Assembly (NCBI GenBank): GCA_030704615.1
Contig: CM060731.1
Coordinates: 15,128,001-15,192,000, forward strand
Direction of reading: 5' to 3'
Source: Takakia lepidozioides
Taxonomy: Eukaryota; Plantae; Bryophyta
DNA: 64,000 nt
Each line of letters opens with the position of its first letter. Positions within the stretch are counted from its first letter, which is position 1. A program made the translations under genes and the position numbers. This document shows positions 31,129 to 62,004 of the stretch, piece by piece. The notes under the pieces were generated by a model. The model did not search any database. It saw only the letters and a program-made list of their open reading frames with translations, and was not told the origin of the DNA.

Positions 31129-31130
31129 AT

Positions 31131-34749: not shown

Positions 34750-35145
34750 AAGGAGCTGCACACGCTGGCCCTCCCCTGACTGCCATCCAGGCCTATAGGA
34801 AGCTGACTCCTCCCAAAAATCCAGGGTGAAGCCCATGGGGTACAACACTACCCCACCAACAAGAACATCGTACGAGACCGCGTCTGTCACAATGGCCTTG
34901 GCTCTCATCACTGAGCCATCTGTAGGATGATCCGGCTGTAGTCTGATAGCCAACTCATGCCGTGTCATGCCCCGAGCCTGCTCTGATCCTCCCAGAGATG
35001 TTTGTATCTGGAAAGGGCACGGCTCCATATCTGCCTCCGTGAGGCCCAAGCCTGCAATAGCAGCTTTGCCCAGTATCAATGGCTGAGCTCCCGAGTCCAA
35101 CAAGACCCGCAGTGGCCAGTACCTCTTGCCTGCCAGTCCACTCAA
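34750..35145 (-). pseudogene. Retropepsin aspartic protease of copy 1, in frame with the DNMT domain
   Basis: RVLLDSGAQ catalytic motif and YDVLVG. Confidence 0.85.
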
Positions 35146-35862: not shown

Positions 35863-37293
35863 CTACTCTAGCTGCTGAAGCCGGTTGGCCATGCCTTGGT
35901 CAACACCCCGACCTCCACGTCCTTGGCCATGTTGAGCTTGCTCTTTGCCTGCACCTTGTGCCTGGCCACCTCGTCCTCTCTGGGCGGCTCCACCTCGCCC
36001 CCGGCCACCATTGTTCCCTTGGAACTGGCCTGGGTGCACCTCAGGATGTAAACCATAACACTGGGCCTCTCCATGCCCGTGCTTGCCACAATGCCCACAC
36101 TGAAATTGTGCAGGCTGTGCATGTGCCGGCCCTTTGCCTCCCTCTGGGCAATCCTTCTTGACATGGGATCCTCCACATGTCCAGCACACCACATCCGCCC
36201 GTTGTTGGCCAGCAAATGAAGGGAGAGACCCCTGCATCTGAGGTCCTCTGTGCCCTTCCCTGAGCTTCACTTGAGTCCCCTTGTTGCCTTGAGCACGTTG
36301 AGGTAGTGATTGGCTAGGAGCACCACTACCCCGTGGTGTCTCCTTAGCAAATCTCACCATGACCACTCGTTCCTCCACCATGTTGAGCTCTATCCGCTCT
36401 GCCAACAAAAACACATTTGCTAAGGTGGGTTGGGCCGCTTGTAGGAGAGTTGCATCCCCCACCCTTCTCCTCAGCTCCTTGTCCAATATCCCATACCAGA
36501 ATTGGACTGCTTGAGCTTCCGTAACCCCTTGGGTTACATTTATGAAGCGCCCATGCAAGTGAAGCCTCCCTCCAGCTCTCGTCGGCCTCCGTTGGAACTC
36601 TTGCAAGCTCCGCAACTTCTCTGTCCTCACCCCTTGGTAGTTCCCTCTCAACTCTTCGAAGAACTCCACAACAGGGTTGAAGGCAGACACGGGTACTAGT
36701 GCTGGTGCGGTACTGGCTTGGGTGGATGTCGTAGCTACTGTACCACCAATCCCACTAGTCCCTCTACTGCTTGCTGAAGCTGCCGGTGCAGCGGCAGGTG
36801 TAGCCACTGCCCTCGTGGCTCTAGTGCCCCTAGTGATGGAGACATAGTCGGGTGACCAGTACATCCTGCACTCCTCGATCTCAACCTCATGCCCCCGCCT
36901 GAACTCATGGTAATCATCCATAGGCGGCCCCTCAAGGTGCTGAAACAGCCCCTTCATGCCATGAAATGCGTAAATAGTTGTGGATTGCCGCATTTGCAAA
37001 TCACACCAACTATCAAACTCTTGGATAAAATCATCCAACTCGATGGTGCCTACCGCCCCAGAGTACCTTCGTGGCCCCTTGGTAGCTCCATACATCTCCT
37101 CCATTGTCTCCCACAACAATGACAAGGAAATAACTTGCACCGCCGGTATGAGTCCTCCTGATTCACAATCCGAATCAGAATCTTCCGTAGAAGACACCTG
37201 AGGTGAAGGTGGCCTAAACCGCACACCTCGTCTCGTGTACCCACTAGTATCGCTAGTGCTCGAACCGACACTTTCCCTAGCAACTAGTGGCAC
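35863..37293 (-). pseudogene. gag of copy 1 with two zinc knuckles
   Basis: Capsid-like region (LDDFIQEFDSWCD...QAVQFWYGILDKELR), CWTCGGSHVKKDC, CGHCGKHGHGEAQC and an RGG-rich tail. Confidence 0.85.
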
Positions 37294-38039
37294 CTCCGTG
37301 TTGACAAACTGTCATTCAACCGGTCATGAACATGTCCCTAATCCCCTCTCCACAAGGTAACCGGGTAGAGAACCTATTGCGGCTTATGGTTTGGAATACT
37401 AAGTTCCTAACATAGCCTACACCTGTACCTGTATCCACTGCAAGCACTCATATGGTTGGCTGGTCATCACCTCCAACCTCACCACAGGAGAAACAATGAT
37501 GATCTGGATGGTCATCACCCCAGCCTCACCATCGACAGCATGCTCTAGGACTGGCCGGTGATCAAATCCGGACCAATCACCTATAAAACAAGCGCCCACA
37601 CAAAACTAGCATGGCGCACAGTCAAGCATGCAGGTATGGAGGGGATCCAAACACAAGAAATCAGAACGACAACTCCCCCACACCAAAAACAACTCCACGG
37701 TGTTGCTCCTGCAAGGACACCCCAGCCCAAACCCGGACTGACTCTTGCCTCCACCTACGAAAGGTCTGGCCTAATGAGAGGGTGGAAACTACGAGGAAGA
37801 GAAACTAAAGCAATGCCTAACCCCAGCATGCCCTATCCCAACACTCTTCCTCTCCTCTCTTCCCTCACTTGCATGACCATGGGAATATCATGAAGATACT
37901 CCTCAAACCGCCCTCCACGAGCTCAAAATTCAGCCTTCAAGACCACATGCCAGTCCTTAGGCAGTCCACCAATGCCTCCACGAGTCAGCACAGGCCGTCC
38001 ACAGGTCAACACGGGCCACCATAGACCAGCACGGCCCAC

Positions 38040-38680
38040 ACAGATCACTGGTCACCATCCATCCACAGCCCATCACACCCCCAAAGGCCACATGTCACTA
38101 CCTGTCACTACCCCACGGCCACAAGGTCACAGCCTGTCACAGCCCATCACCAACCCCAAAAAAGCATAGGCACAGCTTGTCACAGCCCTACAAAGGTCAC
38201 AGGGTCACAGCCCCAAAGGCCACAGCCCCTCACTGCCCCTCACTGCCCCACAGGCCACAGGGCACAGCCTGTCCCAAGCCCGCCATAGCCTATCACAGCC
38301 CTCACACAGCCCGTCACAGCCCCACAGGCACATGGACAGCCTGTCACAGCCCTACACAATTCATAGGGGTCACAGCCCCAAAGGCCACAGCCCCTCACAG
38401 CCCGTCACAGCCCTCCCACAGGCCACTGGGCACAGCTTGTACAGCCCGCACAGCTCACAGCCCATCACAACCCCCAGGCCACAGGGCACAGCCCACCACA
38501 GCCTATCACAGGCCACAGGGCACAACAGGTCACAGCCTGTCACAGCCCCTCACAGCCCCTCATAGCCCCACAGGACACTGGGCAAGCCTGTTCACAACCC
38601 CTCAACAACCCGTCACAGCCCACAGGTCACATGGCACAGCCTGTCACAGCCCTCACAACCCATCATAAGCCCCATCCATG
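38040..38680. repeat. CACAG/CTGTCACAGCCC tandem array in the 5' leader of copy 1
   Basis: Dozens of degenerate (t)cacagccc / ggcacagcctgtcacag units. Confidence 0.9.
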
Positions 38681-40208
38681 GCCTCTCATGGCAGTTTAGC
38701 CATTTCTCCAAGGGGTTTAGCCACGCCAAGCTAGGGTTTGTGTCTCTTGGACACTAGGGTTCTTTGCACCGAGCTATGGCGACTGTGAAGAAATCAGCAA
38801 GGTATTCTTGCTCTTTCGACTCCCACACACCACCAATAGTAGCCCTAAGCCATGAGGAAGATGGTTGCCACAAACCAAGCCTTATTTCTCACTTAGACTC
38901 CCAAACACGCCACTAAACTCAATGGCAAACAACCAGCCTTACTGGTTTCCAGCCCTTGTGAGCACTCATTCAAGCGTTTCCTTGGCATAGCATCTGTTTT
39001 AGAGCCTATTCCAGCCCCCTACATCTGCCACTTCAAGAGCCATGCTCTATCTAGGCTTGAGGTTGAAACCCAACTAAGAACACGCTCTACAAGTGTCGGA
39101 CTGTCACATAAGAGCAGATCAGCCCCCTAACCTTCTCTTCTAGTTCTCTAAAGCTTGAAAACAAAGCCCAATGGACTGAAGGATGCTCCACACATGCCCA
39201 CTCTTGCCACAAGAGAATAGCCCCATTTGCTTCTTTTCTTGCACCCACCAACCTGAAAATACAAGCTTCAGTAGGCTGGTGAAGCATGCTCCACACTGCC
39301 CTACAGGGAAACCAGCCCCTTCCTTCCTTTCTTGCACTCCCAAACTTGAAAGTACAAGCCTTCAACAGGCCGAAGCATGCTCCACACATGCATTGCCCTC
39401 ACATAAGGGAAGTCAGCCCTTCCCTCTTCCTTGCTTGCCCTCCAAGCTTGAAGATGGAAGCTTCAATGAACTGAATACATGCTCCACATATGCAACCTCT
39501 TCACACAAGAGGTATAAGCCCCTCGCCCCTATCTTGGCTCCTTGGCTCATTGATACTCTCTAAGACAAGACTAAGCACTCACAGCCTTTGCCAAGCTCCT
39601 GAAACCCTAAGGCTTACATTTCCGCCACAAGACACTCCTCTTGTGGTGCAAGAGCTCTTCTTCCAAGCTCTGAAACCCTAGGTGCACATTCCATTGTCTT
39701 GCCGCACCTCTTAGCTCCTGTTTCCAGCCTGCTCTTGCCACGACAAGAGCCCTCTCAATGCTGAAGCTCGAGATTGAAACCCAATCTCAAATACTCCACA
39801 AAGTGCACTGATTTGCCCCAAGCCAAATCAGCCCTTTTGCTTGGTCTTGCAATCCTTCACACAATGAAAGCTCGCATCTCCAAGGCTAGTTCTCAGATTT
39901 GCCACCAAAGCCACTATAACCTGCTCTTGACTGGTCCTCTTCCCAATCGTGCTTGCTCATGTATGTACACAATCTGAAACCATCAAGGTGCTCTGGAATT
40001 ACCTGCAGCATGGTGCTTTCATCTCTGAAGCTGAAGATCGAATGCCAAGGTCTACCACCTCGAACCCACATCGCCTCCACTTCTAACAACCAAGAGCTCC
40101 ACGGTGCTCCTTGCATAACAACCTGGTTTCTCTCATTCTCAGCAAAAACCACAAGTGCTACAACTAACTCGTATCTGGCACTCACAGATACGAGCTCATC
40201 TTCTCGAG

Positions 40209-40540
40209 GTAACGAGATAGACGAAGAAGAATACAAGCACAAGCTCATGCGAGCTCACAAAGCTGAAGCATAAACTCATGCATATATAAACTCATCACTC
40301 AAATACAAGTCAAGCCAAGTACACCCCACGCCATGGGGAATCCACACTACGGCGCCATAAGCTAGGCGCGGTGCTCAACTCGAGAAAGATGAGCCTCCCG
40401 CGCTTGCCGTGAAGATAACCACTCCAGGGCCTAAATCTGCCTTGACCCCTGGATTGACACTTGGGTCAATCCCAAATGTCAATCGTAAAAAGCTAGCTAT
40501 TTCCTAGCTAGTTTCACACTAGTGGTCAAATAACTTGACA
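40209..40540 (-). repeat. Terminal segment B of copy 1 (PBS-proximal half of the LTR)
   Basis: Homologous to 46234-46559 and 60602-60928; the inner boundary is diverged in this copy. Confidence 0.88.
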
Positions 40541-41211
40541 CTTTCTTTCTTTCTTTCTTCATCCTTGTATTTTAGCATATAAAAGTATGTCTCCCATACT
40601 CTCTAGGTTTCTCGGCATATTTTTGCGACTTATACCCATGAGGGAAGAACAACAACGATGTTTGAATAGTACTTCAAATTATTTTGAGCAAAATCATTTG
40701 TACAATGTTCAAAATGTGAATTAATAATAACAATATACAATAAAAAGTATACTTGAAATGTACTCTTAGTACGTCTCAAGAACCTTCATAAAATGAATGG
40801 ATACCTATATTTGAAAAGTCTAAACATGAGCAAAAAACAATCACGTATGGCTAATGTGAAATGTTGAATTGGCATTGTCGATACTATCATGATCTACTTC
40901 GGACAAAATAACTATTATGATATTTAAATATTATTTCAGATCGTTTTTGAATAAAATCATGTTTTTTATTGTTTTTTATTTGTTTTTTTAACATGTTTTT
41001 ATTGTTTAAAATGTGAGATAATAATAATAGTATACAATACAAAATCTCTTGAAATTGTGTTATTAGTAAGTTTGAAGAACCTTTTCAACCAATCAAAGTG
41101 TGATGGTGTGTGTAACACAAATGTGCTAATGAGCCTGGGAGTTAGTGGGAGCTTACTTCGACAGAATGGGTTTAGTAGTTGTAAAATGATTTGGTTGTAA
41201 CGAAGAACTTC

Positions 41212-45000: not shown

Positions 45001-46044
45001 GGAAAGGCTCTAAGCAGAGTTGCCTAGCCTATCAGCAGAACTATCCACCATGTTAAAGTCACCAGCAAGGACCCAGTTGGTAACCTGGGGGTACTTCAAA
45101 ATATTTGCTTGCAGCATATTCCAAAACAAAATACAATCCGTGGGTAAATGAGGAGCGTAGATACTGATGAAGGCCGTGGAAGGAAAAAGAGACGACGGAG
45201 AAGAGAAAGCACACTGAGCACGACCTTGCAGCCAAATCTCAACTCTATCAAAGCTGGAGGCCAGAGATGGCGCGATGAGGATTGTCGTTCCACCTCTAGT
45301 TTCCTAAACAGTAGGGTTCCACCAAGAGCTGGGGCTTGGCCAAATGGAATGCCCTAGCGAGATAATTTTCCTAGAATCTAATTTATGCTCCTGAAAAAAG
45401 ACTAAAGAATTAAAGGAAAGCAACTGAGAGGCCCAATTCCTAATTCTGCCTCTCTTAGGAACCGAAGCATCCGATCCTATTCCCCTAATATTCCAAGAAT
45501 AGAGGTTCCAGGTCATGGAGGAAGAGCTTGAAAGCCCGTGAGGTTGTCACGATCTGATGGCTGGAAATTGGTGACTTTGAACATCAGTCCGGGATGAGTT
45601 GGTAGCCTCGAAGGCATCCAATTGAATCCCGTAGGAACTGGAGCTTTCACAGAACCAACAAACCATATTGTAACACAGTCAGATTGAACACCCCCGACTC
45701 TACTGGTGTCGTTTTGAATATCCCTGATTTCGTTGCAATCCCTAAGTGACTGCAGGGGGACTCCCAAAAAAACACAAGATGAAATGAAGAGCTCTAGACA
45801 CCGGGCACGAGCGGGAGTGTCTCCACGCAGGCAGAACCAAAGAGGGGTAAGCATTTACTGCATACAGAACCCATCCATGGGAGGGAGAACAGCGTTCATA
45901 GAAGATAAAGAGTGGGATCATGAGGCTGCCAGAGCTCACCACTGGTGGGCTGGGAATGGCCAGATCCAGAGGGCCCAAGCAGAAGAAAGAATTATCGGCA
46001 TCCGGAATTGGCACTAGCGCGAGGTCGTCAGATTGCAGCGGCTT
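42079..46044 (-). mobile_element. L1/Tx1-type LINE, 3' part (end of ORF1, degenerate ORF2 APE-RT-zinc finger, 3' UTR and poly(A))
   Basis: YSWNIRG, FFQEHK, WVLAGDFNMV, DFDH, GFFKLN, RSVRQGCPLAPFLF, MYADD and HCLVSCP; AATAAA and an A-rich tail at ~42080-42135; internal deletion in the RT N-terminus. Confidence 0.9.
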
Positions 46045-46232
46045 TGTCGTGCGTATACATATCGCTACACAACTACATCGTTGTCCAAAACCACACAACA
46101 CATGTGCACACCACACACTAGTATACCACTAGTCCACCACTAGTCCAGCCACTAGTCCAACCACTAGGCTACAACTAGTTAGTCACTAGGCTGCCACTAT
46201 GCTACCCACTATGGCAGTCACTAGTCCACACA
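46045..46232 (-). repeat. Outer segment A of copy 2
   Basis: 188 bp, about 10 substitutions versus the inner A (46562-46749) by eye. Confidence 0.92.
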
Positions 46233-46233
46233 A

Positions 46234-46749
46234 TGATAAAGAAGAAGAATACAAGCACAAGCTCATGCGAGCTCACAAAGCTGAAGCATAAACTCATGCA
46301 TATATAACCTCATCACTCAAATACAAGTCAAGCCAAGTGCACCCCACGCCATGGGGAATCCACACTACGGCGCCATAGCTAGGCGCGGTGAGGCTCAACT
46401 CGAGAAAGATGAGCCTCCCACGCTTGCCGTGAAGATAACCACTCCAGGGCCTAAATCTGCCTTGACCCCTGGATTGACACTTGGGCCAATCCCAAGTGTC
46501 AATATGTAAAAGCTAGCTATTTCCTAGCTAGTTCACACTAGTGGTAAAATAACTTGACAGCTGTCGTGCGCATACATATCGCTACACAACTACATCGCTG
46601 TCCAAAACCACACAACACATGTGCATACCACTCAGTAGTATATCACTAGTCCACCACTAGTCCAGCCACTAGTCCAGCCACTAGGCTACAACTAGTCAGT
46701 CACTAGGCTGCCACTATGTTGCCCACTATGGCAGTCACTAGTCCACACA
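46234..46749 (-). repeat. Complete replication-defined LTR (A + GC + B, 516 bp) with internal palindrome GACAGCTGTC at 46556-46565
   Basis: Minus strand TGTGTGG...CGACA-GC-TGTCAAG...TTTATCA, directly preceded by the PPT AGGGGGGCG-AT. Confidence 0.88.
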
Positions 46750-46751
46750 AT

Positions 46752-46760
46752 CGCCCCCCT
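46752..46760 (-). promoter_or_regulatory. Polypurine tract of copy 2
   Basis: Minus-strand AGGGGGGCG, 2 nt before the LTR TG. Confidence 0.75.
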
Positions 46761-47009
46761 AGCTGGTGCTTAGGTCCCTCTAAGTTCAGGTAGCCACAAG
46801 ATGTGATAGTTACCATAGCCTCACTAAGTCCTCCACCACTATCCCTACTACACTCAAACTCGATAGATCAAGAGGTCAGGTGCAAGAGTTTCCTCATCGT
46901 TAGTCGCCGTCTTGCAACCTGTGAACTTGAGCCTATGATCTCGTGTATTGACTCCTATGAGCTTGGCCTCCCATGTCTTGTTAGCTGCCTCCAGTCATGT
47001 CCACTGCCA

Positions 47010-48300
47010 CTATCCCAAGCAGTGTGGACATAACCAATCTCCATCAGGAACCCTCTCAAGAGGTGGTGTCAAGCATCCCATATGCCAACCTCTTGAGCAT
47101 CGATCACACACCAGCATGGTGGCTGCCCCTTTGGCAGACCCACAGAGTATGCACCTCAAACCTGCAGGTACCACTACCAAGTTTGGGTCAACTCTACCAT
47201 CGACATTAGGAAGGTGACATGTCGCACAATTACGCACATGGTCCTTCCAAGTCATGCCATCCCGACCCTCCAAGATCAGGACCCCTGAGGGCAACACCTC
47301 TCGAACCCTCAGAATAACACGCCCTGAAGTAACATCCAGGGTCGTAGGAGCAGTCTGCTGCAAATAAACATAGTCACCAAGGCTAAACCTTCAAACCCTA
47401 GGACGATATCCTCCACCACGTATAGTGGCATACCTCAACGTATCACAGTGCTGTGCAATGGCAAGGTTCTCAAAAGCCATGGGCATGACTTTCTTGAACA
47501 ACTTTGCACGCTGACCACATGCACGAACCCACACGTCCGGATCATCAAGGTTAAGGACTTGAGCAGTGTCCCTACGAATGGCTGCAAGCAAATCCGGCTC
47601 TCGGCCAAAGAGAAGGAAATATGGTGAGAAGGAAGCAAGTGAAGCTTGTTTGCTGAACCTGTAGCCCATGGCTAACCAATGAACCTGAAGATCCCAATCT
47701 CCTAGGTGTCCCTTCTCCAAGCCATACTTGCGCAAACCCCTCTTCACCGTCTGAACAACTCTCTCTGCCAAGCCATCGGCCTCAGGATGATCCTGAGAAG
47801 TGGTGCGGTGGTCTATCAAGGCTTTATCACACAAAGCCTGAAACTCCCCCAAAAACTCTCTCTCTTGGTCCGTGAGTACCTTAGTTGGAGCACCGAATCG
47901 GCTAAGCACACGATCCAGGAAAGCATACGCAACCCCCTCACTAGCCTTGTCAGGCAATGGAACCAACTCAATCCACTTGGAGAAGTACTCCACCATCACC
48001 ATGGTGGCGCATAGTAAGTGGCAACGGTCCTGCGAAGTCAAGACTCCACCTGTAGCCCAACCCCATGATTGGTAAATGATGCAACTGTGGTGTAGGGGTG
48101 TTGAATGAAGCATGCATCCTGTTACACACCATGCACCTAGCCACGAACTGTTGCACCTTTGTATGCATTCCACGCCACCAATAATGCCCCTGCAGTAAAC
48201 TGTGAGTGCGTCGCACTCCAAAATGCCCCAACTCCTCATGGGCATGCCGCACTAACCGTGCACGCTGTGTGGGGTAAGGCACAATCCTCACCCGACCATC
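47010..48300 (-). pseudogene. DDE integrase with C-terminal PHD finger, copy 2
   Basis: HHCC finger, WSLDFAGPL, VLTDQEREF, DGLAERVVQTVK, then CILC...CDRC...WHMGC...WLCPHC (C4HC3); a frameshifting deletion near 48005 and a stop at 47391. Confidence 0.92.
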
Positions 48301-49189
48301 CTCCCATACTTGGAGTAGGTGTATCCCCTCCCACTTGAATCTCTTGGCTCGTTGTAGGATCCGATCCATCTCCTTGGCTGTCACAGTGGTTGTCGTGTCT
48401 CCAATACGGAGGTAGTCCAACACAGCTGAATCCTCATGTATATCTCTGGCACCACCTGGCTCATCACTAGCCTCAGGGTCCTTAGATACTCCGTCTACAG
48501 TCATCCCTGTTGTAGGTCCAACCTGACCTCCCGATGCCAAGATACACAAAAAGGCAGATGCATGCCATCCCGCCACCATTTCCTCGTCCATCTCACCATG
48601 CCACCGAGCTCCAATGTCATCCTGCTAGCTCGTGCATGGATTGCGATTCAATCCATCCGCATCCCTATTGACCAAACCCGGTCGATGCACAACCTGAACA
48701 TGTCTTTCATGCTCCTCCACCGTAGTACAAAATGCAAAGCAATTCCTGTAAGCCTCAGGAACCGCCATATACGTCGTCTCTCTCCTCTAGTGACAATAGG
48801 TCCAATGTCAAGCTCCCAATTGCCCTTCGTAACTGCAACCTTAAGTCCAGCAAACTTAGAGGTAGAGGACGCGTCCCGTGGTTGCTATGCCGCAACCTCT
48901 TGAGCAGTACTCCCTGCCTGCTCAGTCAATGACAAGGCCTCATCCTGCCCCATCATCTCATCCTCAAGGACTTCCTCCACTCGAGAAAAATCCCCAGCCT
49001 CATCCATCACCGCTACCTTGGCTGCCAACTCCCTCTGAACCTCGAGCACCTCCCATGTCTATCATGGATGCCTGCACCCCGTGGTCCTCACATGCTCGCC
49101 CCCACTCACTGCCTGTACCGTCTCGGTAGGCAGAGAGACCATCGAGGGAAGTGTACTCCGCGCTCTGCGTTGCTCAGCCATAGCCAAGC

Positions 49190-50135
49190 TGATAATCCAG
49201 GTCAAGCAATTGAGATCCATTGCTTGCCCCAACACCTGACGACGTGATGCCTCAGAAAGAGACGACACCGCCGTGGTACCAGTGGTAAAACCCATCGCCC
49301 GTTCACGCTTGTCAGCATTAGGCTCCACTAACTGCTGCAACTGAGCATCCCACAGGAGGCCAGGTCCACTATCCCGGAAAGCATCGATCCTGGGAAGCTG
49401 AGCAGTGTAGGTATTGTTGCTTGTGAGTGACCACCCTGTTGACCGCTGCCAAAGGTAAACGGTCATCGTGTCTCACACACTGAGACTGCCTCCATGTGTC
49501 CAAAATGCTATCCACTATGAGGTGTGCTGGCCGCTGCACCCCATCAAATGCACGCTTGAGCAGTGCGGGTGACATCAAGTTAGTTCACTATAGCCGTGGA
49601 CAATGAGCCCGTGACCTCACTGTAGCTGCATCCAGCAACACTGCTGACCCAAGCCACGACCGGACTTGATGCACACTGGCTATCACCCTGGCCCGAGAAT
49701 CGCCCATCAGTGGCACATTCTCCAAGATGTATGTTGGAGATACAGCTTGATGAAGCTGCAAGTGGCACAAAACCCGCACCGTCTCCCAAAATAGACCCGA
49801 TCTCGAATCTCGCAATCCATTGTCATGCCCGCCTGATGAATGTCCTTGGCAGGGCCAACCTGCCACTACCAGATCAATGGAGCCAACCCGCTCCAAATCA
49901 TGCGCCCCCAGTAACGAAATGTCTGTTGGCAAGGCCTGCTGATATCCACGAACTGAAGACACCGGCAACAACTCAGGGTACCACTGCACCAACTGAGCAA
50001 CATGACGAAGTGAAACGCGTGGTGCAGTCTCATCCCTCTCCACATATAGGTAACGTCGAACTCGTAGACCTGCCTGTAACACAACAGCCAATCCGGTGTT
50101 GATCCCGCCAAACAAGTCCAGAAGACAAATGTCTT
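49190..50135 (-). pseudogene. DNMT3-like C5 cytosine methyltransferase domain, copy 2
   Basis: Same motifs as copy 1 (DLFGGINTG, AGWPCQGHS, ENV, RAHCPRL, RERAMGF, LGQAMD); both Trp codons after motif VIII are now stops (~49585-49590). Confidence 0.92.
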
Positions 50136-50139
50136 CATC

Positions 50140-53115
50140 CGGATACTGCCACACAATAGGTGTGGTGTCCAATGGAGACAACTGAGGTGGTCCTGGTGCA
50201 ATCCCCACACTCTCCTCCTCTCCTGACGGTACAAAAGCCTCCACCCAGGCTTGTTGCACCCGTCGATCAGCATCCCGCTGCAAATCCTTGCTTGTGCCCC
50301 ACAATGGAGTCTGAGCAACCATGGTAGGCAACTCCGCCATACCATACATGTCATCCTGCTCTCCCGGAGGTGGCACATCCTCTGAATGAGCGTTGCCCTC
50401 AAGCAACTCTCCAAGCCCACTCACTGCAGCTGTGAATGCTGCCAGTGTCGGCATCTTGCCTCGCTGGGCAACCGCAACTCCTCCTATGAACGTCACAGGG
50501 AGCTGCACACGCTGGCCCTCCCCTGACTGCCATCCAAGCCTATAGGAAGCTGACTCCTCCCAAAAATCCAGGGTGAAGCCCATGGGGTACAACACTGCCC
50601 CACCAACAAGAACATCGTATGAGACCGCGTCTGTCACAATGGCCTTGGCTCTCATCACTGAGCCATCTGTAGGATGATCCGGCTGTAGTCTGATAGCCAA
50701 CTCACGCCGTGTCAGGCCCCGAGCATGCTCTGATCCTCCCAGAGATGTTTGTATCTGGAAAGGGCACGGCTCCATATCCGCCTCCGTGAGGCCCAAGCCT
50801 GCAATAGCAGCTCTGCCCAACATCAATGGCAACAAGACTCGTAGTGGCCGATACCTCTTGTCTGCCGGTCCACTCAAACAGAAAATGTCATCCTGGTTGT
50901 CTAACATGACAACTCCAGGTGTCACCATGACTCGCTCAATGGCTGGCCTAGCTGGCAGCTCCATCAACCTAGCAGCTGCAGCTTGCCATGGCGCCGCTGT
51001 GGCAGTCTTGACCCTCAAATCCGAGGATCCCTCCGGCACTACACCTCCCACTATCTCCGTAGAAGATGAAGTAACCTCCTCACTTTCACAGAGTGTAGCT
51101 GCCAGCCTGAACATCTCAGCTGGTCTTACCCCCGGCGTCGCAATCATGGTAGCCGAGAACAATGGAGCCTGGCACACAGCTATGGCTGCCCCCAGCAGCA
51201 CACTAGCTGCCGTAGCCTTGGCAACACTAGGTAGTGGTGTTGCCCGTGTAGCTCTCCCCAATGGCATAGTAACCTCCGCCTCGGTAACAGTCGGGCAAGA
51301 ACTAGGTGCCATGGACGGCGTCGACACTGTCTCCGCCAATGTGAATGACTGAGGAAGCCTGGCCTGACGGCTTGCCTCCCCACGCTATGGATCCAACTCC
51401 ACCTCCGCACCTCGTGGCTCAGGAACTTGTGCTGCTCCTCGAGTCACTGCCGCAGCTGACTCCACTTGCACTAGTGGTAGTCCTGCCCCCAGTGGTAGTC
51501 CTGCCCCGCACATAGTGGTAGTGGTAGTGGCACCCCTCACTAGTGGTAGTGCTGCCCCGCACATGAATCCCATGCCTCCCAAGTCTCCTCCTTTAGGAGC
51601 AGGAGGTGGACCATCCGACCTTGGAGCCGGTACCACCTGAGCTGTGGCCATGGCAGCGAGCCTCTGCTCAAGCTGCTGAAGCCGGTTGGCCATGCCTTGG
51701 TCAACACCTTGACCTCCGCGTCCTTGGCCATGTTGAGCTTGCCCTTGGCCTGCACCTCGTGCTTGGCCACCTCGTCCTCTCTGGGCTGCTCCACCTCGCC
51801 CCCGGCCACCATTTTTCCCTTGGAACTAGCCTGGGCGCAACTCAGGATACAAACCATAGCACTGGGCTTCTCCATGCCAATACTTACCACAATGCCCACA
51901 CTGAAACTATGCAGGCTGTGCATGTGCCGGCCCTTTGCCTCCCTCTGGGCAATCCTTCTTGACATGGGGTCCTCCACATGTCCAGCACACCACATCCGCC
52001 CGTTGTTGGCCAGCAAATGAAGGGAGAGACCCCTGCATCTGAGGTCCTCTCTGCCCTTCCCTGAGCTTCACCTGAGCCCCCTTGTTGCCTTGAGCACGTT
52101 GAGGTAGTGGTTGGCTAGGAGCACCACTACCCCGTGGTGTCTCCTTAGCAAATCCCACCATGACCACTCGTTCCTCCACCATGTTGAGCTCTATCCGCTC
52201 TGCCAGCAAAAACACATTTGCTAAGGTGGGTTGGGCCGCTTGTAGGAGAGTTGCATCCCCCACCCTTCTCCTCAGCTCCTTGTCCAATATCCCATACCAG
52301 AATTGGACTGCTTGAGCTTCCGTAACCCCTTGGGTTACATTTATGAAGCGCCTCATGCAAGTGAAAGCCTCCCTCCAGCTCTCGGTCGGCCTTTGGAACT
52401 CTTACAAGCTCCGCAACTTCTCTGTCCTCACCCCTTGGTAGTTCCCTCTCAACTCTTCGAAGAACTCCACAATAGGGTTGAAGGCAGGCACGGGTACTAG
52501 TGCTGGTGCGGTACTGGCTTGGGTGGATGTCGTAGCTACTGTACCACCAGTCCCACTAGTCCCACTGCTGCTTGCTGAAGCTGTCGGTGCAGCGGCAGGT
52601 GTAGCCACTGCTCTCGTGGCTTTGGTGCCCCTAGTGATGGAGACATAGATGAGTGACCAGTACATCCTCCACTCCTCGATCTCAACCTCATGCCCCCGCC
52701 TGAACTCATGGTAATCATCCATAGGCGGCCCCTCAAGGTGCTGAAACAGCCCCTTCCATGCCATGAAATGCGTAAATAGTTGTGGATTGCGCATTTGCTG
52801 CAAATCACACCAACTATCAAACTCTTGGATAAAATCATCCAACTCGATGGTGCCTACCGCCCCAGAGTACCTTCGTGGCCCCTTGGTAGCTCCATACATC
52901 TCCTCCATTGTGTCCCACAACAATGGCAAGGAAACAACTTGCACCGCCGGTATGAGTCCTCCTGATTCACAATCCGAATCAGAATCTTCCGTAGAAGACA
53001 CCTGAGGTGAAGGTGGCCTAAACCGCACACCTCGTCTCGTGTACCCACTAGTATCGCTAGTGCTCGAACCGGCACTGTCCCCAGCAACTAGTGGCACCTC
53101 CGTGTTGACACTCAA
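50140..53115 (-). pseudogene. gag and protease region, copy 2
   Basis: Colinear with copy 1 gag-PR, with several stops; the DSGAQ motif is deleted at ~50830. Confidence 0.85.
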
Positions 53116-55834
53116 CCGGTCATGAACATGTCCCTAATCCCCTCTCCACAAGGTAACCGGGTAGAGAACCTATTGCGGCTTATGGTTTGGAATACTAAGT
53201 TCCTAACATAACCTACACCTGTACCTGCATCCACCGCAAGCACTCCTATGGTTGGCTGGTCATCACCTCCAACCTCACCACATGAGAAACAATGATGATC
53301 TGGTTGGTCATCACCCCAGCCTCACCATCGACAGCATGCTCTAAGACTGGCCGGTGATCAAATCCGGACCAATCACCTATAAAAACAAGCGCCCACACAA
53401 AACTAGCATGGCGCACAGTCAAGCATGCAGGTATGGAGGGGATCCAAATACAAGAAATTAGAACGACAACTCCCCCACACCAAAAAACAACTCCACGGTG
53501 TTGCTCCTGCAAGGACACCCCAGCCCAAACCCGGACTGACTCTTGCCTCCACCTACGGAAAGGTCTTGGCCTAATGAGAGGGTGGAAACTACGAGGAATA
53601 GAAGCTAAAGCAATGCCTAACCCCAGCATGCCCTCATCCCAACACTCTTCCTCTCCTCTCTTCCCTCACTTGCATGACCATGGGAATATCATGAAGATAC
53701 TCCTCAAACCGCCCTCCACGAGCTTCAAAATTCGGCCTTCAAGACCGCATGTCAGTCCTTAGGCAGTCCACCAGTGCCTCCACGAGTCAGCACAGGCTGT
53801 CCACAGGTCAACTCAGGCCACCACAGACCAGCACAGGCCCACACAGATCACTGGTCACAGCCGTCACAGCCCCACACAGGCCACAGCCCATCACAACCCC
53901 AAAGGCCACATGGCACAGCCTGTCACAGCCCATCACAATCCCAAAGGCCACAGGCACAGCCTATCACAGCCCTACAAAGGTCACAGGGTCACAGCCCCAA
54001 AGGCCACAGCCTGTCACAGCCCCTTACAGCCCTATAGGCCACAGGGCACAGCCTGTCACAGTCCTTCACAGCCCGTCACAGCCCCACAGGCTACAGGGCA
54101 GAGCCTGTCCCAGCCCGCCACAGCCTGTCACAGCCCCTCACAACCTGTTGAAGCTGCAATTCTGTAACGGCAACTTTCCAACATTTTTTGCCCAAAATTA
54201 CATTTGCAACGGAGTTTGTTGTCTTCCATTACGACGCCATATGAGTCTACACCAATTTTATAAAGGATTCAAGGTGAATATGTACCTCCAATCTTATGTA
54301 CACTAAATAACATTGTAATCCATACAAGCCTTCTCATATAGATTGTGATTTGTGATGCAAGTCCTCTGGTTGAGTTGAGGTTATAGAGCCTTTCTGTTCC
54401 TTCCAATCATTTAATGCCGAAATTGCCCCGAGAAGTGCAATACCTTCATTCTCTTTCACATGCCACCACTACAACAGATTGCGGCTTTTACGACTCTGTG
54501 TTATGACTGCAAATGCAGTTATGAAAGCCATTTACGACTTCATGACTCTACAGTCGTAAAACCCTAGTCAGTTGTGGCATGGCAGATATGACTTGCCAGC
54601 CTGGCTGTGACGTGGCGCCTGAGCAGCTGTGGGGGTAGTAATACACGCTGGCGTTACTGAATGACTGAACAGGTCCATGTCAGCCGCTGTGTAAGAGAGA
54701 CACGTGCTCTCTACAGAACACACCACGTGTCAGACTGCGACGCCATCCCGACTGCAGAGGAGGGAATTAGACGTAAGCACGTGTCGCATCGCGATTTTGA
54801 CACGTGGTTTCTCATATCAATTGACAAGCGTCGCTGTGGGGGTGTTGGGGATTTAATTTATTGTTATTATAATTACTATAATAATAATAATAATAATAAT
54901 TATTATTATTATTATTATTACTTTTGACCAACAGGGGACAGTGGCACATTATTAAATAACGAATTTTGAAATTATATTTTTAGATAAAATATTTATTCGC
55001 TCAGATACCAAAACACACCCTTCCGGGGAAGGAGAGTTTGCCTTGGTTCCTATGCTGAATTGCGTCTGCTACTCTTTGTAATCTAACAGGCATTCACCTT
55101 TTTGCCTCTGTTGTCCCACCATTGACTGGGGTTAGAAAAGTTCATTCCACAGCTTCTCCTCATCTCTGTTACCTGTTTATGGATACTTTCCTATTGTCAC
55201 TTTGGCAGTATCATGTCAAAGTCACTCCAAACTATCTACCATCTACCCATGACCATCTACCCATGCAGGTTTCTTGTAGCTATCCTTCCACAGGGAATCA
55301 TCGGTAATCTAGAGCTTGAAATCCGGCTCTCTTGGATGATCTGGACCCACACTCTATCCTTGCTCCTTCAGCTATCCATGCCTCTACATAGATCATGCAT
55401 ATATCCTTGCATTGCTGTTAGCAGCTGACAATGACAGCCTACATTTGTTCCAGCAAACACCCAACTCAACTTATCACACTAGTTCCTATTCTCAATTGCA
55501 TCTGCTACTCTCTATAATCCAACAGGCATTTACCTTTTTGCCTCTGTCCCTGCTCTTTCAGCTATCACTGCTTCTGCACAAATCATGCATACTTCCTTGC
55601 CTTGCAGCTGATAATGATAGCCTAGATTTGTTCTAGGAAACACCCAACTCAGCTTATCACACTAGTTCCTATGCTGAATTGCGTCTGCTCTCTATAATCT
55701 AACAGACATTAATTTTTTTCCCTCGGTTGTCCCACCATTGACTGGGGTTGGAAAAGTATTCATTCCACAACTTCTCCTCGTCTTCGTGACTTGTTTCTGG
55801 ATACTTTCCTGTTGTCACATTGGCAGTATCATGT

Positions 55835-56135
55835 CAAAGTTCAGATCGACATCTAGTACAATTCCAGCTTGGACGATGTTACCACGAACCTCTTTGCTAT
55901 TTTGCAGGGCTGCCAGGCTTGCACACATGTTGCAAACGTAACAAACGCGATGTGGTTGCACTGCAGTATCCCTTCCCACACCACTTGCTCATAGACCTCT
56001 CCAAAGGGCCTCCATCCCGCGCTGCTGTTGTGCATATCCTGGGATCATCATCCTCCATGCACCCCAATTTGGCATACAAGTCCACAAGGGCATAGTTCAT
56101 AACAACATTTGTTTAATTCCAGCTTGGACGATGTC
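55835..56135 (-). pseudogene. PLS-class PPR gene fragments carried inside the CACTA element
   Basis: Frameshifted peptides NVVMNYALVDLYAKLGCMED and ALQNSKEVRGNIVQAGIVLDV resemble PPR S/P and L motifs. Confidence 0.6.
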
Positions 56136-57642
56136 ATCACATTGGCAGTATCATGTCAAAGTCACTCCAACTAGATTCACTCAACCAGCTAACTTGCAGA
56201 ATTCAACATGAAAATTTAGGGCCGATTCTGATAAGAGGGGAAAATAGGGTGAAATGTGTTTCAGAAGGTGCCTTCATTAGCAGTGCTTGATTTTATCAAT
56301 TGTGCCGCTGCTGCTGCGGCTTCCAGTTGACCATCTACCCATGCAGGTTTCTTGTATCTATCCTTCCACAGGGAATCATAGATAATCTGGAGCTTCAAAT
56401 CTGGCCCTCTTCCACACTCTATCCCTACTCCTTCAGCTATCTATGCCTCTATACAAAATCATGCATACAACAATCATTCCAGCAAACACCCCCAACCCTA
56501 CTTATCAATGAACAACGAGCTAACTTACATAATTCAACATGCATCTCAGGGCCGAGTCTGATGAGAGGGCAAAACATGCTGAAATAGGTCGAAGAAGAAC
56601 CCATAGAGGATTTGACCGACCATCAGCCCAAAAGGACCTCTTGTGTGTACTGCTTGTGTCTTGTAGTCAGGTAATGTCGGATTGGTCTGTGAGAACTAGC
56701 ATGGTGCATATGAGCAGGCAGAGATTGAAACACGGTCTGCTAAGACCAAGCTGACTCTCCCAAGAACCTTGAAACATCAGGAAGAATACCAGGAGGTGGA
56801 AGGCTTCCGAGGAGGAAGACCTCCGGACGTCCACCCCAAGACACCAACATGCATCAGCTACAACCCAAAACAGCAGAAACAATACTCTAAAACATGTGGT
56901 GAACTGAATAGCTGACAATAGGCCACTTGCACAGGCAAAAGGACGAGTCTTCAAAAACCAAAATCCCCTTAACACAGCCTGACGGATCAGACCCCATCCA
57001 GCTTCAGTTGAAAATCATGATAAAACCTTCCTAGCAGCACTTCAAAAACTAAAATACAAGCCTTAGTACGACCATTCAAACAGGTGCCTACATACAAACA
57101 TGGAGGTCGGAAATGCTTACATCATCAATGTAAAAGTCCACGTCTGCATTTGAGAGTACACTGCCATCACTGTCAATCACATGCGTCTTGTGCTTGTATG
57201 TCAACAACGCCATCCTGCCAAATACATATGTATGTACATCAAAGTGCAGCCTTTCCAAGACATGCCAATAGTACAAATCTCCAGTCGTCATGATTTTGGC
57301 ATATCTCTCCCTCCCTCTCTAAACACAGACAGACCAAACTGGGCGCAGGGGTCTATGGCTATAGTGCTACGGCAAACAATGTCTAAAGCATACATTCTAC
57401 AGACACGGATGAGACGAGACTATTCTGCAAAGCTGCTACGGCCATAGCTCTAGCCAACTCCACTCTGGCCAGCCGCATCCTCCATCCACTCGTAGAAGGA
57501 TGTGCCATGAACTTTGGCGAAAGCACTTTCTCCACACATACCCTAACGTTTCTAGGGTTGATTGCTTCAGATGCGAAGGTTGCTCCAACTGCGGGCCTCC
57601 CATGCATGTTTGCCCTCAAAGTAACAACCCTACCCCTTTCTG

Positions 57643-57856
57643 ATTTTTTTTTCTTTTTTTTTTCTTTTCTTAAAGGAAACCACAGGCCCTTGAGGAGGGG
57701 GAAAAATTCACCCGCCTTCATTTAAGGGCCATAAGACCTACATGACGATCAACACCCAGACATACCGTCACGAACAATCCCACACACGGGATAAGGGCAG
57801 CGGGTTTGAACCCCAAACCACCAAGCCGACACACTGTGCCACTTACCAGTCGATGT
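57643..57856 (-). mobile_element. Possible tRNA-derived SINE inside the CACTA element
   Basis: Minus-strand A-box-like TGGTAAGTGG, B box GGTTCAAACC and an A-rich tail (plus-strand T run 57643-57670). Confidence 0.4.
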
Positions 57857-58326
57857 GTTTTTTTTTAAATCTTTTTGCACTTTGTTTTTTTTTTTGTTTT
57901 TTTTTAATTCATTCTAGTGGTCAGAGTCTCCGTTTTTTCAAAATATAAATACTCATATATTATATATATAACCAGAAAAGCATGTGTCGACACGTGCAGT
58001 CATGTAGTGATTCATCCATGTGATGATCTGGCAGATTGCATTAGAGTGAGAGTCATGAAGTCATATGTCTGTCTAGCAATATGTACACGTCATTCCAGTG
58101 TAGCCATGACCGTGACTGGTAGTCATATCTACCATGCCAATATTCGTGGTCAAACATGTTTGACCTGTGTTGCGCAGAGTCCGAAGCCATACAGTCGCAT
58201 ATACGCTTTTCCCAGACCTGCATTATGACTTCAAAAGCATTTTACGATTGCAAATGGCATTTCTACCACAAATCTGTCAAGACTGCGCACCCATGGGAGT
58301 CATAAAAACCGCAATCTGTTGTAGTG

Positions 58327-59065
58327 CACATGGCACAGCCTGTCACAGCCCTAAACAGGTCACAGGGGTCACAGCCCCTCACAGCCCGTCACAGCCCCAC
58401 AGGCCACATGGCACAGCCTGTTACAGCCCTACACAGGTCACAGGGGTCACAGCCCCAAAGGCCACAGCCCCTCACAGCCCGTCACAACCCCACAGGCCAT
58501 AGGCCACAGCCCCTCACAGCCCATCACAGCGTGTCACAGCCCGTCACAGCCACAAGCCACAGGGCACAGCCCACCACAGCCTGTCACAGCCTAGCACAGC
58601 CCCATAGGCCACAGGGCACAACCTGTCACAGCCCCTCATAGCCCGTCACAGCCCCACAGGCCACAGGGCACAGCCTGTCACAGCCCCTCACAGCTCGTCA
58701 CAGTGCCAAAGGCCATTGGGCACAGCCCGTCACAGCCCATCACAGCTCGTCACAGCCTGTCACAGCCCATCACAGCCCCACAGGCCACTGGGCACAGCCT
58801 GTCACAGCCCCTCATAGCCCGTCACAGCCCCACAGGCCACAGGGCACAGCCTGTCACAGCCCCACAGGCCACAGGGCACAGCCTGTCACAGCCCCTCACA
58901 GCCCGTCACAGCCCCACAGGCCACTGGGCACAGCCTGTCACAGCCCCTCATAGCCCGTCACAGCCCCACAGGCCACAGGGCACAGCCTGTCACAGCACCT
59001 CACAGCCCGTCACAGCCCCACAGGCCATTGGGCACAGCCTGTCACAGCCCGTCACAGCCCCATCC
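58327..59065. repeat. CACAG tandem array of the copy 2 leader (continues 53850-54148 left of the nested insertions)
   Basis: Same units as 38040-38680, with more copies. Confidence 0.9.
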
Positions 59066-60585
59066 ATGGCCACTCATGGCAGTTTAGCCATTTCTCCAAG
59101 GGTTTAGCCACGCCAAGCTAGGGTTTGTGTCTCTTGGACTCTAGGCTTTTTTGCACCGAGCTATGGCGGCTGTGAAGAAATCAGCAAGGTATTCTTGCTC
59201 TTTCGACTCCCACACACCACCAATAGTAGCCCTAAGCCATGAGGAAGATGGTTGCCACAAACCAAGCCTTATTTCTCACTTAGACTCCCCAAACACGCCA
59301 CTAAACTCAATGGCAAACAACCAAGCCTTGCTGGTTTCCAGCCCTTGTGAGCACTCATTCAAGCGTTTTCCTTGGCCATAGCATCTGTTTTAGAGCCTAT
59401 TCCAGCCCCGTACATCTGCCACTTCAAGAGCCATGCTCTATCTAGGCTTGAGGTTGAAACCCCAACTAAGAACACGCTCTACAAGTGTCGGACTGTCACA
59501 TAAGAGCAGATCAGCCCCTTACCTTCTCTTCTAGTTCTCTAAAGCTTGAAAACAAAAGCCCAATGGACTGAAGGCATGCTCCACACATGCCCCACTCTCG
59601 CCACAAGAGAATCAGCCCCTTTGCTTCTTTTCTTGCACCCACCAACCTGAAAATACAAGCTTCAGCGGGCTGGAAGCATGCTCCACACATGCCCTACAGG
59701 GAAACCAGCCCCTTCCTTCCTTTCTTGCACTCCCAAACTTGAAAGTACAAGCCTTCAATAGGCCGAAAGCATGCTCCACACATGCATTGCCCTCACATAA
59801 GGGAAGTCAGCCCTTCCCTCTTCCTTGCTTGCCCTCCAAGCTTGAAGATGGAAGCTTCAATGAACTGAATACATGCTCCACATATGCAACCTCTTCACAC
59901 AAGAGGTATCAGCCCCTATCTTGGCTCCTTGGCTCATTGATACTCTCTAAGACAAGACTAAGCACTCCACAGCCTTTGCCAAGCTCCTGAAACCCTAAGG
60001 CTTACATTTCCAGCCACAAGACACTCCTCTTGTGGTGCAAGAGCTCTTCTTCCAAGCTCTGAAACCCTAGGTGCACATTCCATTGTCTTGCCGCACCTCT
60101 TAGCTCCTGTTCCAGCCCTGCTCTTGCAACGACAAGAGCCCTCTCAATGCTGAAGCTCGAGATTGAAACCCAATCTCAACATACTCCACAAAGTGCACTG
60201 ATTTGCCCCAAGCCAAATCAGCCCTTTTGCTTGGTCTTGCAATCCTTCACACAATGAAAGCTCGCATTCCCAAGGCTAGTTCTCAGATTTGCCACCAAAG
60301 CCACTATAACCTGCTCTTGACTGGTCCTCTTCCCAATCGTGCTTGCTCATGTATGTACACAATCTGAAACCATCAAGGTGCTCTGGAATTACCTGCAGCA
60401 TGGTGCTTTCATCTCTGAAGCTGAAGATCGAATGCCAAGGTCTACCACCTCGTAACCCACATCGCCTCCGCTTCTAACAACCAAGAGCTCCACGGTGCTC
60501 CTTGCATAACAACCTGGTTTCTCTCATTCTCAAGCAAAAACCACAAGTGCTACAACTAACTCGTATTTGGCACTCACAGACACGA

Positions 60586-60601
60586 GCTCATCTTTCTCGA
60601 G
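60586..60601 (-). promoter_or_regulatory. Candidate self-priming primer-binding site
   Basis: Abuts the LTR end, does not begin with TGG, and is perfectly complementary to 60767-60782 inside segment B. Confidence 0.65.
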
Positions 60602-60928
60602 TGATAAAGAAGAAGAATACAAGCACAAGCTCATGCGAGCTCACAAATCTGAAGCATAAACTCATGCATATATAACCTCATCACTCAAATACAAGTCAAG
60701 CCAAGTGCAGCCCGCGCCATGGGGAATCCACACTACGGCGCCATAGCTAGGCGCGGTGAGGCTCAACTCGAGAAAGATGAGCCTCCCGCGCTTGCCGTGA
60801 AGATAACCACTCCAGGGCCTAAATCTGCCTTGACCCTTGGATTGACACTTGGGCCAATTCCAAATGTCAATATGTAAAAGCTAGCTATTTCCTAGCTAGT
60901 TTCACACTAGTGGTAAAATAACTTGACA
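60602..60928 (-). repeat. 5'-terminal segment B of copy 2
   Basis: Near-identical to 46234-46559. Confidence 0.92.
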
Positions 60929-62004
60929 GCTTGTCTATGGTGCAGGAGTACTTCTGAGAGGAACGGAACGCCTCCACCAATTTCAATCCCGCGTCATAAG
61001 TTGTCAGCAGGTAGGGCCGTCCTGTGGGTGATCCCAGCTCCGAGGGGACGCTGGAGCCCGAGAGCCATTTTTGCGAAACTCCATCATACTGCAAGTCGGG
61101 AACGTCAGAAAACCTCAACACAGGGAGCACTTGAACGAAAAACATTTTCTTGGATACTGACTGATGAATCCGAGATCCAAAATAGACAGCAGTTTCCGAA
61201 GATAAATCGAACAGGGGGAGGGAAGTGGCGAAAATCTCCCTGATTTTGTTGAGAATAAGCTCCAGCTTCTTCCCCGGAGCTAGGGAGAGAACATCCTTCT
61301 TTGTAATCCAAGCGGAGACAATTTTATTACTCCCTGAGATAAGAATAGAGGTTGCGCCTTCCGGAAACCCAAAAATGATGGGCGAGATGTTGATAGCCAC
61401 TGACTGGCCTCCCACCAAGTGAGAGGCATCCGGCAGGGCAACGTCTGCGAAGGATCTGAGTTGAAGAAAAAAGGAAGCCAAATTTCCCTTTCCCCCCTGA
61501 GCGGCCAACGGAAAGATGGCTGGGATATCGGCAGAGATCGGAGGAGGTCCCTGAGAGGGCGAAGATAGCAGGAACACCCTCGGGCTGATGGAGGAAGGAG
61601 AGAGGTCAATCCTTGCCCTCTTAGCCTGGGGCTGGGCTGGCAGAGTAACATCAACTCTCTTCAGGGACGACCCTCCTCGTAACCCCTGCATGTCTCGGGC
61701 ACCTGGAGCATCCATGAAATGAACAACGTTAGCTTTGGCCTTTAATAAAACCGGGCAATTCGATTTAACGTGGCCCTCAGCATTGCAGTGAAAACAGATG
61801 ACTGGAAGGACGATCTCTTGAACTTTAACTGTGACAAACGAGTTATCAAGAGTAGGGAGTTTAATAGAATTTGCAATGGGGGCAGCTTTAGGCATCATGA
61901 CCACTAGATGTGGTACTCCACCATCTCTGTGGGCTTCATAAGCATGCATATCGTTAGCACGGGAGACTGCATCCTCCTCCATGTAATCGTACACATTAGT
62001 ACAC
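60929..62004 (-). mobile_element. Same L1-type LINE, 5' part (ORF1 with zinc knuckle), separated from the rest by retrotransposon copy 2
   Basis: CFHCNAEGHVKSNC knuckle; the frame ...TIDK rejoins PLQSDDL... at 46040 when the insertion plus one TSD is removed. The 5' boundary is approximate. Confidence 0.85.

Follow-up and report, generated by a model that had tools for sequence, protein, structure and literature searches.

Two decayed elements of Ty3/gypsy descent lie in a 64,000-nt stretch of the genome of the bryophyte Takakia lepidozioides (GenBank assembly GCA_030704615.1, contig CM060731.1, positions 15,128,001 to 15,192,000; hereafter the window), and both are joined to host DNA at a site inside their long terminal repeat (LTR). 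The explanation that we consider probable is that copy 1 (30953-40540) and copy 2 (46045-60928), which are both encoded on the minus strand, are members of the streptophyte Gypsy-DNMT3 elements from which reverse transcriptase (RT) and RNase H have been deleted, and that they were inserted as permuted cDNA by way of a palindrome within U3. The permuted architecture, the palindrome, and 4-bp target site duplications (TSDs) recur in independent elements of other species, far beyond what chance would produce.

Copy 2 is built from two repeated segments, termed A and B, which occur on the coding strand in the order B-PBS-internal-PPT-A-GC-B-A (PBS, primer binding site; PPT, polypurine tract). Along the plus strand, the order is gctt, A, a single base, B, GC, A, PPT (reverse complement), internal region, PBS (reverse complement), B, and gctt. 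The terminal A (A2, 46045-46232), the 5' part of U3, closes the element with CACGACA on the coding strand and shares 94.7% identity with the PPT-proximal A (A1, 46562-46749). The inner B (B2, 46234-46559), which comprises the 3' part of U3 together with R and U5, shares 97.6% identity with the 5'-terminal B (B1, 60602-60928), where the coding strand starts with TGTCAAG; all four segments lie on the minus strand. The outer A and B are separated by a single base (46233), while GC at 46560-46561 separates B from the inner A and forms the center of a 10-bp palindrome, GACAGCTGTC (GACA-GC-TGTC, 46556-46565), in which integrase end sequences stand back to back. On the plus strand, the flanks read gctt/TGTCGTG...CTTGACA/gctt, giving the TSD GCTT on either side (46041-46044 and 60929-60932). 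The PPT (46752-46766, minus strand; CCAGCTAGGGGGGCG on the coding strand) is directly upstream of A1 and the PBS adjoins B1, so that the LTR they delimit is A+GC+B, and the element is joined to host DNA at either half of the palindrome inside this LTR, the GC at its center being gone. The original prediction had proposed this layout, with its repeat positions, LTR limits, host junctions, and 4-bp TSD, and the repeats and their order were confirmed base for base.

Copy 1 shares both termini with copy 2 (TGTCGTG... and ...CTTGACA on the plus strand). The original prediction had noted these identical ends; the layout is not the same, however, the order being only B-internal-A, with a single A at the 3' terminus (30953-31128, followed by the PPT at 31131-31146) and a single B at the 5' terminus (40223-40540, with the adjoining PBS decayed), all on the minus strand. 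Its TSD, cttt (30949-30952 and 40541-40544), sits within a ctttctttc low-complexity run and is weaker evidence when taken alone. The two copies are collinear at 90-94% identity, save for a 4.2-kb insert private to copy 2. The only read evidence for these structures comes from short Logan contigs, which bridge the junctions of copy 2 one by one, none of them spanning the whole A-B-A block: X2 record 16 covers flank/A, X1 record 5 and X5 record 21 cover the A/B joint, and X5 record 24 covers B-GC-A, where X5 is an independent sample.

Recurrence of the Permuted Layout Across the Family

Homologs of the DNMT-bearing piece of the window copies, a cytosine-5 DNA methyltransferase domain, are present in Calypogeia fissa, Marchantia polymorpha, Sphagnum species, and many metagenome contigs. 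Using this homology, 80 metagenome loci were fetched, and the flanks of 88 loci were inspected in all. The permuted layout was encountered in Calypogeia fissa, some 30 metagenome contigs associated with mosses, and Klebsormidium-like contigs, and a perfect 4-bp TSD is found in eight elements (window copies 1 and 2, L001, L004, L036, L028, L053, and L076).

Along its coding strand, here the plus strand, the Calypogeia fissa element (L001) consists of aggt, B (6855-7193), PBS through PPT, A-GC-B, A-GC-B, A, and aggt; it has the GACA-GC-TGTC site twice, exact B/A joints, and the 4-bp TSD AGGT. A distant Klebsormidium-like contig (L004) reads cttt, B, PBS and internal region, A-GC-B-A, and cttt, and a second one (L006) has the same layout at its 3' end, the sole end of that element used. 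Among the metagenome contigs, L036 has the full layout with the TSD cata, and the 3' block of A, central dinucleotide, B, and A is present in L008, L041, L051, L073, and L084. Elements of the B-internal-A form (hereafter n = 1, as opposed to n = 2 for those ending A-GC-B-A) also occur with perfect TSDs (L028, tgtt; L053, atta; L076, acta). In L019, L084, and the Sphagnum element L002 (6359-16886, n = 1), three of the four TSD bases match. None of the 27 5' ends in the family joins host DNA at the ends defined by PPT and PBS; host junctions at those tips, in most family members, were the outcome that would have counted against the predicted layout.

The integrase end site, CACGACA-GC-TGTCA or CACGACA-AT-TGTCA, is conserved across the family, and the palindrome itself is conserved in L001, L004, L006, L008, L036, and L041. 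Its center is GC in most elements and AT in L051 (7718-7721) and L084 (15858-15862); both dinucleotides are self-complementary, and the palindrome is thus kept. Conservation among the window copies, L001, and the moss clade extends to the terminal ∼45 nt of A and to the PPT region, and the PPT of copy 2 is conserved in L001, L036, L041, and L073. In the reads, the sequence before the A terminus is diverse, as expected of host junctions, whereas that before the PBS-side end of B is uniform and matches the PBS region; both junction types are present also in the independent plant-metagenome sample. In the best-holding runs, contig depth was about 1e6 for the element against about 170 for the flank, a crude measure that gives no copy number, which is a rough sign that the family is very abundant in the Takakia lepidozioides genome.

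Several observations concern individual loci. The 3' end of L001 (15454-16429) carries three LTR-equivalents (A-GC-B, A-GC-B, and A), which could have arisen by unequal crossing-over or from a multimeric precursor. Upstream of the L006 element there is an inverted B copy (3870-4192) flanked by aaat, the reverse complement of the attt beside the 3' end, an arrangement pointing to an inversion or to a second element. In Sphagnum L002, two segments with 71% identity (7934-8710 and 16910-17661) were considered as LTR parts and rejected, as they belong to an unrelated dispersed repeat with an inverted copy at 13938-14589; this repeat of ∼0.7 kb, with ∼70% identity between copies, is present in three copies within and around the element, and a search for repeats can take it for LTRs. 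No recognizable termini were found at the Marchantia locus (L003). Solo B-A units were found neither in the window nor in the flanks of the 88 loci, an absence that means little for loci picked by DNMT homology.

Limits of the LTR, Putative Self-Priming, and Exact Joints

The PPT (...CTAGGGGGGCG) adjoins A in these elements, and immediately past the 5' B comes a stretch of 12-17 nt whose complement lies within B, 171-182 nt before its end. In copy 2, this putative self-priming PBS comprises 17 nt (60586-60602, minus strand) and is complementary to 60766-60782 within B1, 181 nt before the end of B, where the genomic RNA would have its 5' end and R would start. The PBS sequence varies by lineage (17 nt in the window, 12 nt in L001, 14 nt in L004 and Klebsormidium nitens, and up to 17 nt in the moss clade), and the PBS and its partner site in B covary at a fixed position in all of these. 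Such covariation matches the signature of Tf1-type self-priming and would put the start of R halfway along B; U3 would therefore consist of A, GC, and the first ∼150 nt of B.

The U5/U3 joint of copy 2 (46233-46234, minus strand) reads ...CTTTATC followed by ATTGTGTGG... on the coding strand, that is, the base before the PBS followed by the base after the PPT. The B/A joints within proviruses have this exact form in 10 of 10 cases. Furthermore, A1/A2 and B1/B2 divergences are similar within each element (the window, L001, L004, and the moss metagenome), and both A copies were therefore produced from one template in each replication cycle, after which the two cDNA tips would be joined exactly, U5 to U3. 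The proposal that head-to-tail joined cDNA precedes insertion gains from these data, since a joint of this kind must predate the insertion. An intact A-GC-B is kept downstream in the n = 2 layout only, and transcription starting inside the 5' B can therefore give a full RNA with terminal redundancy from this layout alone; copy 1 and other n = 1 copies are unable to propagate. The two classes are about equally common, with 11 n = 1 copies and 10 with n of at least 2.

Gene Content and Loss of the Reverse Transcriptase

Pfam searches identified Integrase_H2C2 and rve domains and the cytosine-5 DNA methyltransferase domain (PF00145) in both window copies, along with a weak aspartic-protease match. 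In copy 2, the integrase remnants are distributed over two frames (47394-48624), and the methyltransferase domain lies within a piece of open reading frame (ORF) at 49591-51384 (E 5.5e-11). In copy 1, the integrase (31569-32636) is followed along the plus strand by an ORF piece with the weak protease match and the methyltransferase domain (33553-35160), and by a gag-like ORF piece (35866-37311) which itself has no Pfam match, the homologous region of relatives being Retrotrans_gag or zf-CCHC. All of these features are on the minus strand. A private deletion of ∼96 nt near 32021 removes the catalytic Glu region of the DD35E motif from the integrase of copy 1, a stretch which copy 2 keeps (47685-47782).

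Neither RVT_1 nor RNase H has a Pfam match in the window copies, and tblastn with the RT and RNase H of relatives yielded no match anywhere in the window. In those relatives, RVT_1 and RNase H lie between the DNMT domain and the integrase, where the window copies hold 0.3 kb (32815-33139, minus strand, in copy 1) compared with 1.4-2.5 kb in L001 and L002. This deletion is common to both copies, because it falls in a block where they align without a large gap. The expectation of a complete Ty3/gypsy element in the window thus failed on this point; the copies are non-autonomous derivatives, and members of Ty3/gypsy by descent only. The shared deletion therefore shows that an RT-less derivative was mobilized in trans at least once.

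The autonomous relatives have the organization gag-(PR)-DNMT-RT-RH-DDE integrase, with CCHC gag, DNMT, RVT_1, RNase H, H2C2, and rve domains. L002 has RVT_1 and RT_RNaseH_2, L004 and L006 have RVT_1, RNase H, Integrase_H2C2, and rve, and PF00145 lies upstream of RT in L001, L004, L006, and L002. DD35E residues are conserved in the family integrase. The window ORFs yielded no tyrosine recombinase, PF00589 or other, and neither did L004 and L006, in which RT, RNase H, and integrase are all kept; the attribution of insertion to a DDE integrase is upheld by both observations. In two loci, an ORF with a PHD finger, possibly a chromatin-targeting module, lies just after the integrase (L004, 16739-17431; L006, 13058-13834).

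With respect to classification, the order RT, RNase H, and H2C2 plus DDE integrase that is typical of Ty3/gypsy is present in L004 and L006. The elements also have the short TSD (4-6 bp in that group) and TG...CA termini, here TGTC...GACA, and a PBS beside the 5' repeat with a PPT beside the 3' repeat. Two complete terminal LTRs with junctions at their tips are absent; the 5' end has B only, and the 3' end has A or A-GC-B-A.

A Model for Permuted Insertion

In the model that we favor, reverse transcription would set the LTR as A-GC-B, with U3 beginning after the PPT, R beginning at the self-priming site in B, and U5 extending to the PBS. The end sequences used by the DDE integrase (TGTCA... 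and ...CACGACA) would then lie back to back inside U3 as GACA-GC-TGTC, away from the LTR tips. Before or during integration, the cDNA tips would be joined head to tail (U5/U3), as a 2-LTR circle or its equivalent, and the joined cDNA would be opened at the palindrome of the PBS-proximal LTR. Cuts 3' of each CA would produce recessed CA-3'OH ends with 2-nt 5' overhangs, with loss of the center dinucleotide; such recessed ends would match retroviral 3' processing, and the missing dinucleotide at the host junctions is consistent with it. Host DNA would be joined to the palindrome halves with formation of the 4-bp TSD, making the insert a circular permutation of the cDNA. The n = 2 order, B-internal-A-GC-B-A, would require joined tips. 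The n = 1 order, B-internal-A, may result from A/A recombination after insertion, from a 1-LTR circle, or from cutting of both palindromes of a linear cDNA.

The cleavage step has precedent in retroviral integrases, which cleave a palindromic LTR-LTR junction internally in vitro, yielding 3'-processed ends (HIV-1, PMC1905944; PFV, PMC1180852); in foamy virus, internal cleavage of the junction also takes place in cells (PMC1180852). Opening of joined cDNA by integrase at the palindrome, as originally predicted, is the reading best supported by the TSDs and by the lack of a tyrosine recombinase from relatives in which RT, RNase H, and integrase are all kept.

The extra LTR unit occurs on one side only. 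Among the 27 independent 5' ends, none has A and the central dinucleotide before B, while 10 of the 21 PPT-proximal A copies are followed by the dinucleotide, B, and A (Fisher p = 5e-5). A closed 2-LTR circle would contain two identical palindromes, and opening of the PPT-proximal one would give B-A-GC-B-PBS...A. The rule that tandem units are confined to the 3' side is new here, and it narrows the possible mechanisms.

This rule is the first of several points that weigh against the model. A symmetric 2-LTR circle predicts 5' tandems as often as 3' tandems, and as the former are absent, a simple circle model is incomplete. This leaves three options: selection of the PBS-proximal site, a precursor other than a symmetric circle, or far faster loss of 5' tandems. 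In addition, the circle or joined cDNA is deduced from the structure of the inserts, the start and ends of the RNA are placed from sequence features, and exact joints in 10 of 10 cases are more uniform than one would expect from cellular end joining. Both window copies are dead, and are thus uninformative on activity.

The strongest competitor, which we nevertheless regard as unlikely, is an asymmetric, non-circular precursor in which formation of the joint and opening are coupled to reverse transcription, such that no free symmetric 2-LTR circle exists. In one variant, the PBS-proximal LTR would become double-stranded well ahead of the arrival of plus-strand synthesis at the PPT-proximal LTR, and integrase could assemble there first, cut its palindrome, and hold both halves, the freed A later joining the U5 tip; in another, RT would jump end to end, from U5 to U3. 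The restriction of tandem units to the 3' side, the uniformly exact joints, and the homogenization of both A copies in every cycle would all be explained in this way. The proposed intermediates are hypothetical, however, and the timing argument derives from the textbook order of plus- and minus-strand synthesis; moreover, quicker loss of 5' tandems, in which the 330-bp repeats would be only ∼119 bp apart, could mimic the asymmetry.

Far less probable is a canonical LTR element whose true LTR is B+A, with the observed forms due to post-insertion rearrangement, truncated 5' LTRs, or assembly artefact. B-A does start with TG, end with CA, and bear TSDs, but this reading is contradicted by the 5' B, which in 27 independent elements, drawn from several species and samples, always has the PBS and not A directly after it, by the PPT, which adjoins A and not B, and by the junction contigs, which recur in the independent sample.

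More improbable still is integration by a tyrosine recombinase like that of DIRS, PAT, and Ngaro elements, supplied by the element itself or in trans. Those elements normally insert without a TSD. The split direct repeats (A1-B1-A2-B2) are shared with them, and the order is identical to that of PAT, Ngaro, and TOC1, with the extra unit downstream of the coding region (PMC4157794). Here, in contrast, no recombinase ORF is found in L004 and L006, eight elements have a perfect 4-bp TSD, and the CA/TG ends and a DD35E integrase are conserved, RT-RH-IN being of Gypsy type. As in PAT, Ngaro, and TOC1, only the full layout would give a terminally redundant RNA.

A cut-and-paste DNA transposon with a Gypsy-derived integrase, similar to Ginger, was raised on account of the integrase and DNMT without RT in the window copies, and of termini that fit the TGTNR ends and 4-bp TSD characteristic of Ginger1, and is similarly remote: it is contradicted by RVT_1 and RNase H between DNMT and integrase in relatives, by the PPT, PBS, and exact U5/U3 joints as signatures of reverse transcription, and by the lack of terminal inverted repeats past 4-7 bp at the element ends.

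Returning to the insertion of joined cDNA at the palindrome, a broader version of this model is that the att sites lie mid-U3 throughout the clade, from Klebsormidium to liverworts and mosses, with joined cDNA as an obligatory intermediate that is opened directionally at the PBS-proximal LTR. This extension is plausible, although we hold it only tentatively. More speculatively, the element's own DNMT, acting on the CpG beside the site (CACGACA), could mark one LTR copy and so set the direction.

Relationship to Known Elements

A Gypsy element with a DNMT3-type cytosine methyltransferase inside pol, KnitGypsy-Dnmt3, has been described from Klebsormidium nitens, and the legend to Fig. 4c of that study gives a DIRS repeat structure with Gypsy domains (de Mendoza et al., 2018, PMC5890265). 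The same combination of DIRS-like split direct repeats with Gypsy domains is seen here in copy 2, L001, L004, L036, and others, and the methyltransferase is likewise shared. The original prediction held that no Ty3/gypsy lineage with this layout had been described, a claim that this legend shows to be wrong. In the passages of that paper retrieved by term search, the repeat layout appears in the Fig. 4c legend alone, with no mention of TSD, palindrome, PBS type, n = 1/2/3 classes, or mechanism. The name "streptophytes (Gypsy-DNMT3)" is used in a preprint (bioRxiv 10.64898/2026.05.21.726589), and a full-text literature search returned no paper giving TSDs, palindrome, PBS type, or mechanism for the Gypsy-DNMT3 family.

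The window DNMT piece matches the Klebsormidium-like protein P0055 (E 9e-49), which is 54% identical to the K. nitens protein KFL_014220010. The TGTCA start and the putative self-priming PBS are found again at a K. nitens 5' end (L087), in a comparison that covers the 5' end only, as the contig ends inside the element. The window copies differ from KnitGypsy-Dnmt3 in being bryophyte members and in having neither RT nor RNase H. The window copies are thus new bryophyte members of a known, mechanistically unexplored Gypsy-DNMT3 kind.

Comparison with retroviral 2-LTR junction cleavage reveals the same palindrome of back-to-back ends, which is cut 3' of each CA to give ready-processed ends (PMC1180852, PMC1905944), and which would be cut likewise here. 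In retroviruses, the palindrome exists only at the U5/U3 joint, and cutting restores the normal linear order; in Gypsy-DNMT3 elements, by contrast, it is built into U3, cutting would permute the element, and the U5/U3 joint stays intact in the provirus. The putative priming would resemble that of Tf1 and sushi-type elements, as the PBS has its complement in the 5' leader of the element itself and not in a tRNA, and the complementarity is kept through sequence change; it differs in that the partner site of this putative self-priming is in the middle of the 5' repeat B. By analogy only, IS3/IS30 circle-junction transposition also has abutted ends, a few bp apart, as the active substrate for a DDE enzyme, although in the present elements the abutted ends are permanent in the repeat and the DNA is made by reverse transcription.

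Additional Features of the Window

The insert private to copy 2 (54137-58326) lies inside a zone of 52-bp tandem repeats and is foreign to the family. Within it lie repeats of its own (55046-56467) and a perfect palindrome of 42 bp (54879-54920), and no match to it was found elsewhere in the window. The 52-bp tandem array, rich in CACAGCCC, separates the 5' B/PBS region from the gag-like ORF in each copy and differs in length between the two (38064-38690; 53814-54136 and 58327-59110). An isolated GACAGCTGTC at 27107-27116, outside any A- or B-like repeat, may be due to chance (∼0.06 sites expected per 64 kb) or may be a relic of another family. The right flank of copy 2, gcttgtc, was likened to GC plus TGTC; this was judged a coincidence, given that other TSDs have no initial GC.

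Implications for the Gypsy-DNMT3 Family

In the textbook view, LTR retrotransposons and retroviruses insert linear cDNA by the tips of their LTRs, and circles are dead ends. The Gypsy-DNMT3 clade has been successful over several hundred million years of green-lineage evolution, yet it inserts at an intra-LTR site. Given such insertion and the exact U5/U3 joint within the provirus, an intermediate with joined tips therefore looks obligatory, and the family offers a natural test bed for the disputed use of LTR-LTR junctions by integrases. For annotation, standard LTR finders will miss or mis-bound these elements, n = 1 copies being without any terminal repeats, while n = 2 copies carry complete promoters reading outward at the 3' end. 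The findings also separate the split-direct-repeat layout from tyrosine recombinases. If the proposed mechanism is true, the architecture of PAT, Ngaro, and TOC1 would be a property of the replication scheme and not of tyrosine recombinases, and a retroviral-type integrase would naturally act as a restriction-like cutter of an internal palindrome.

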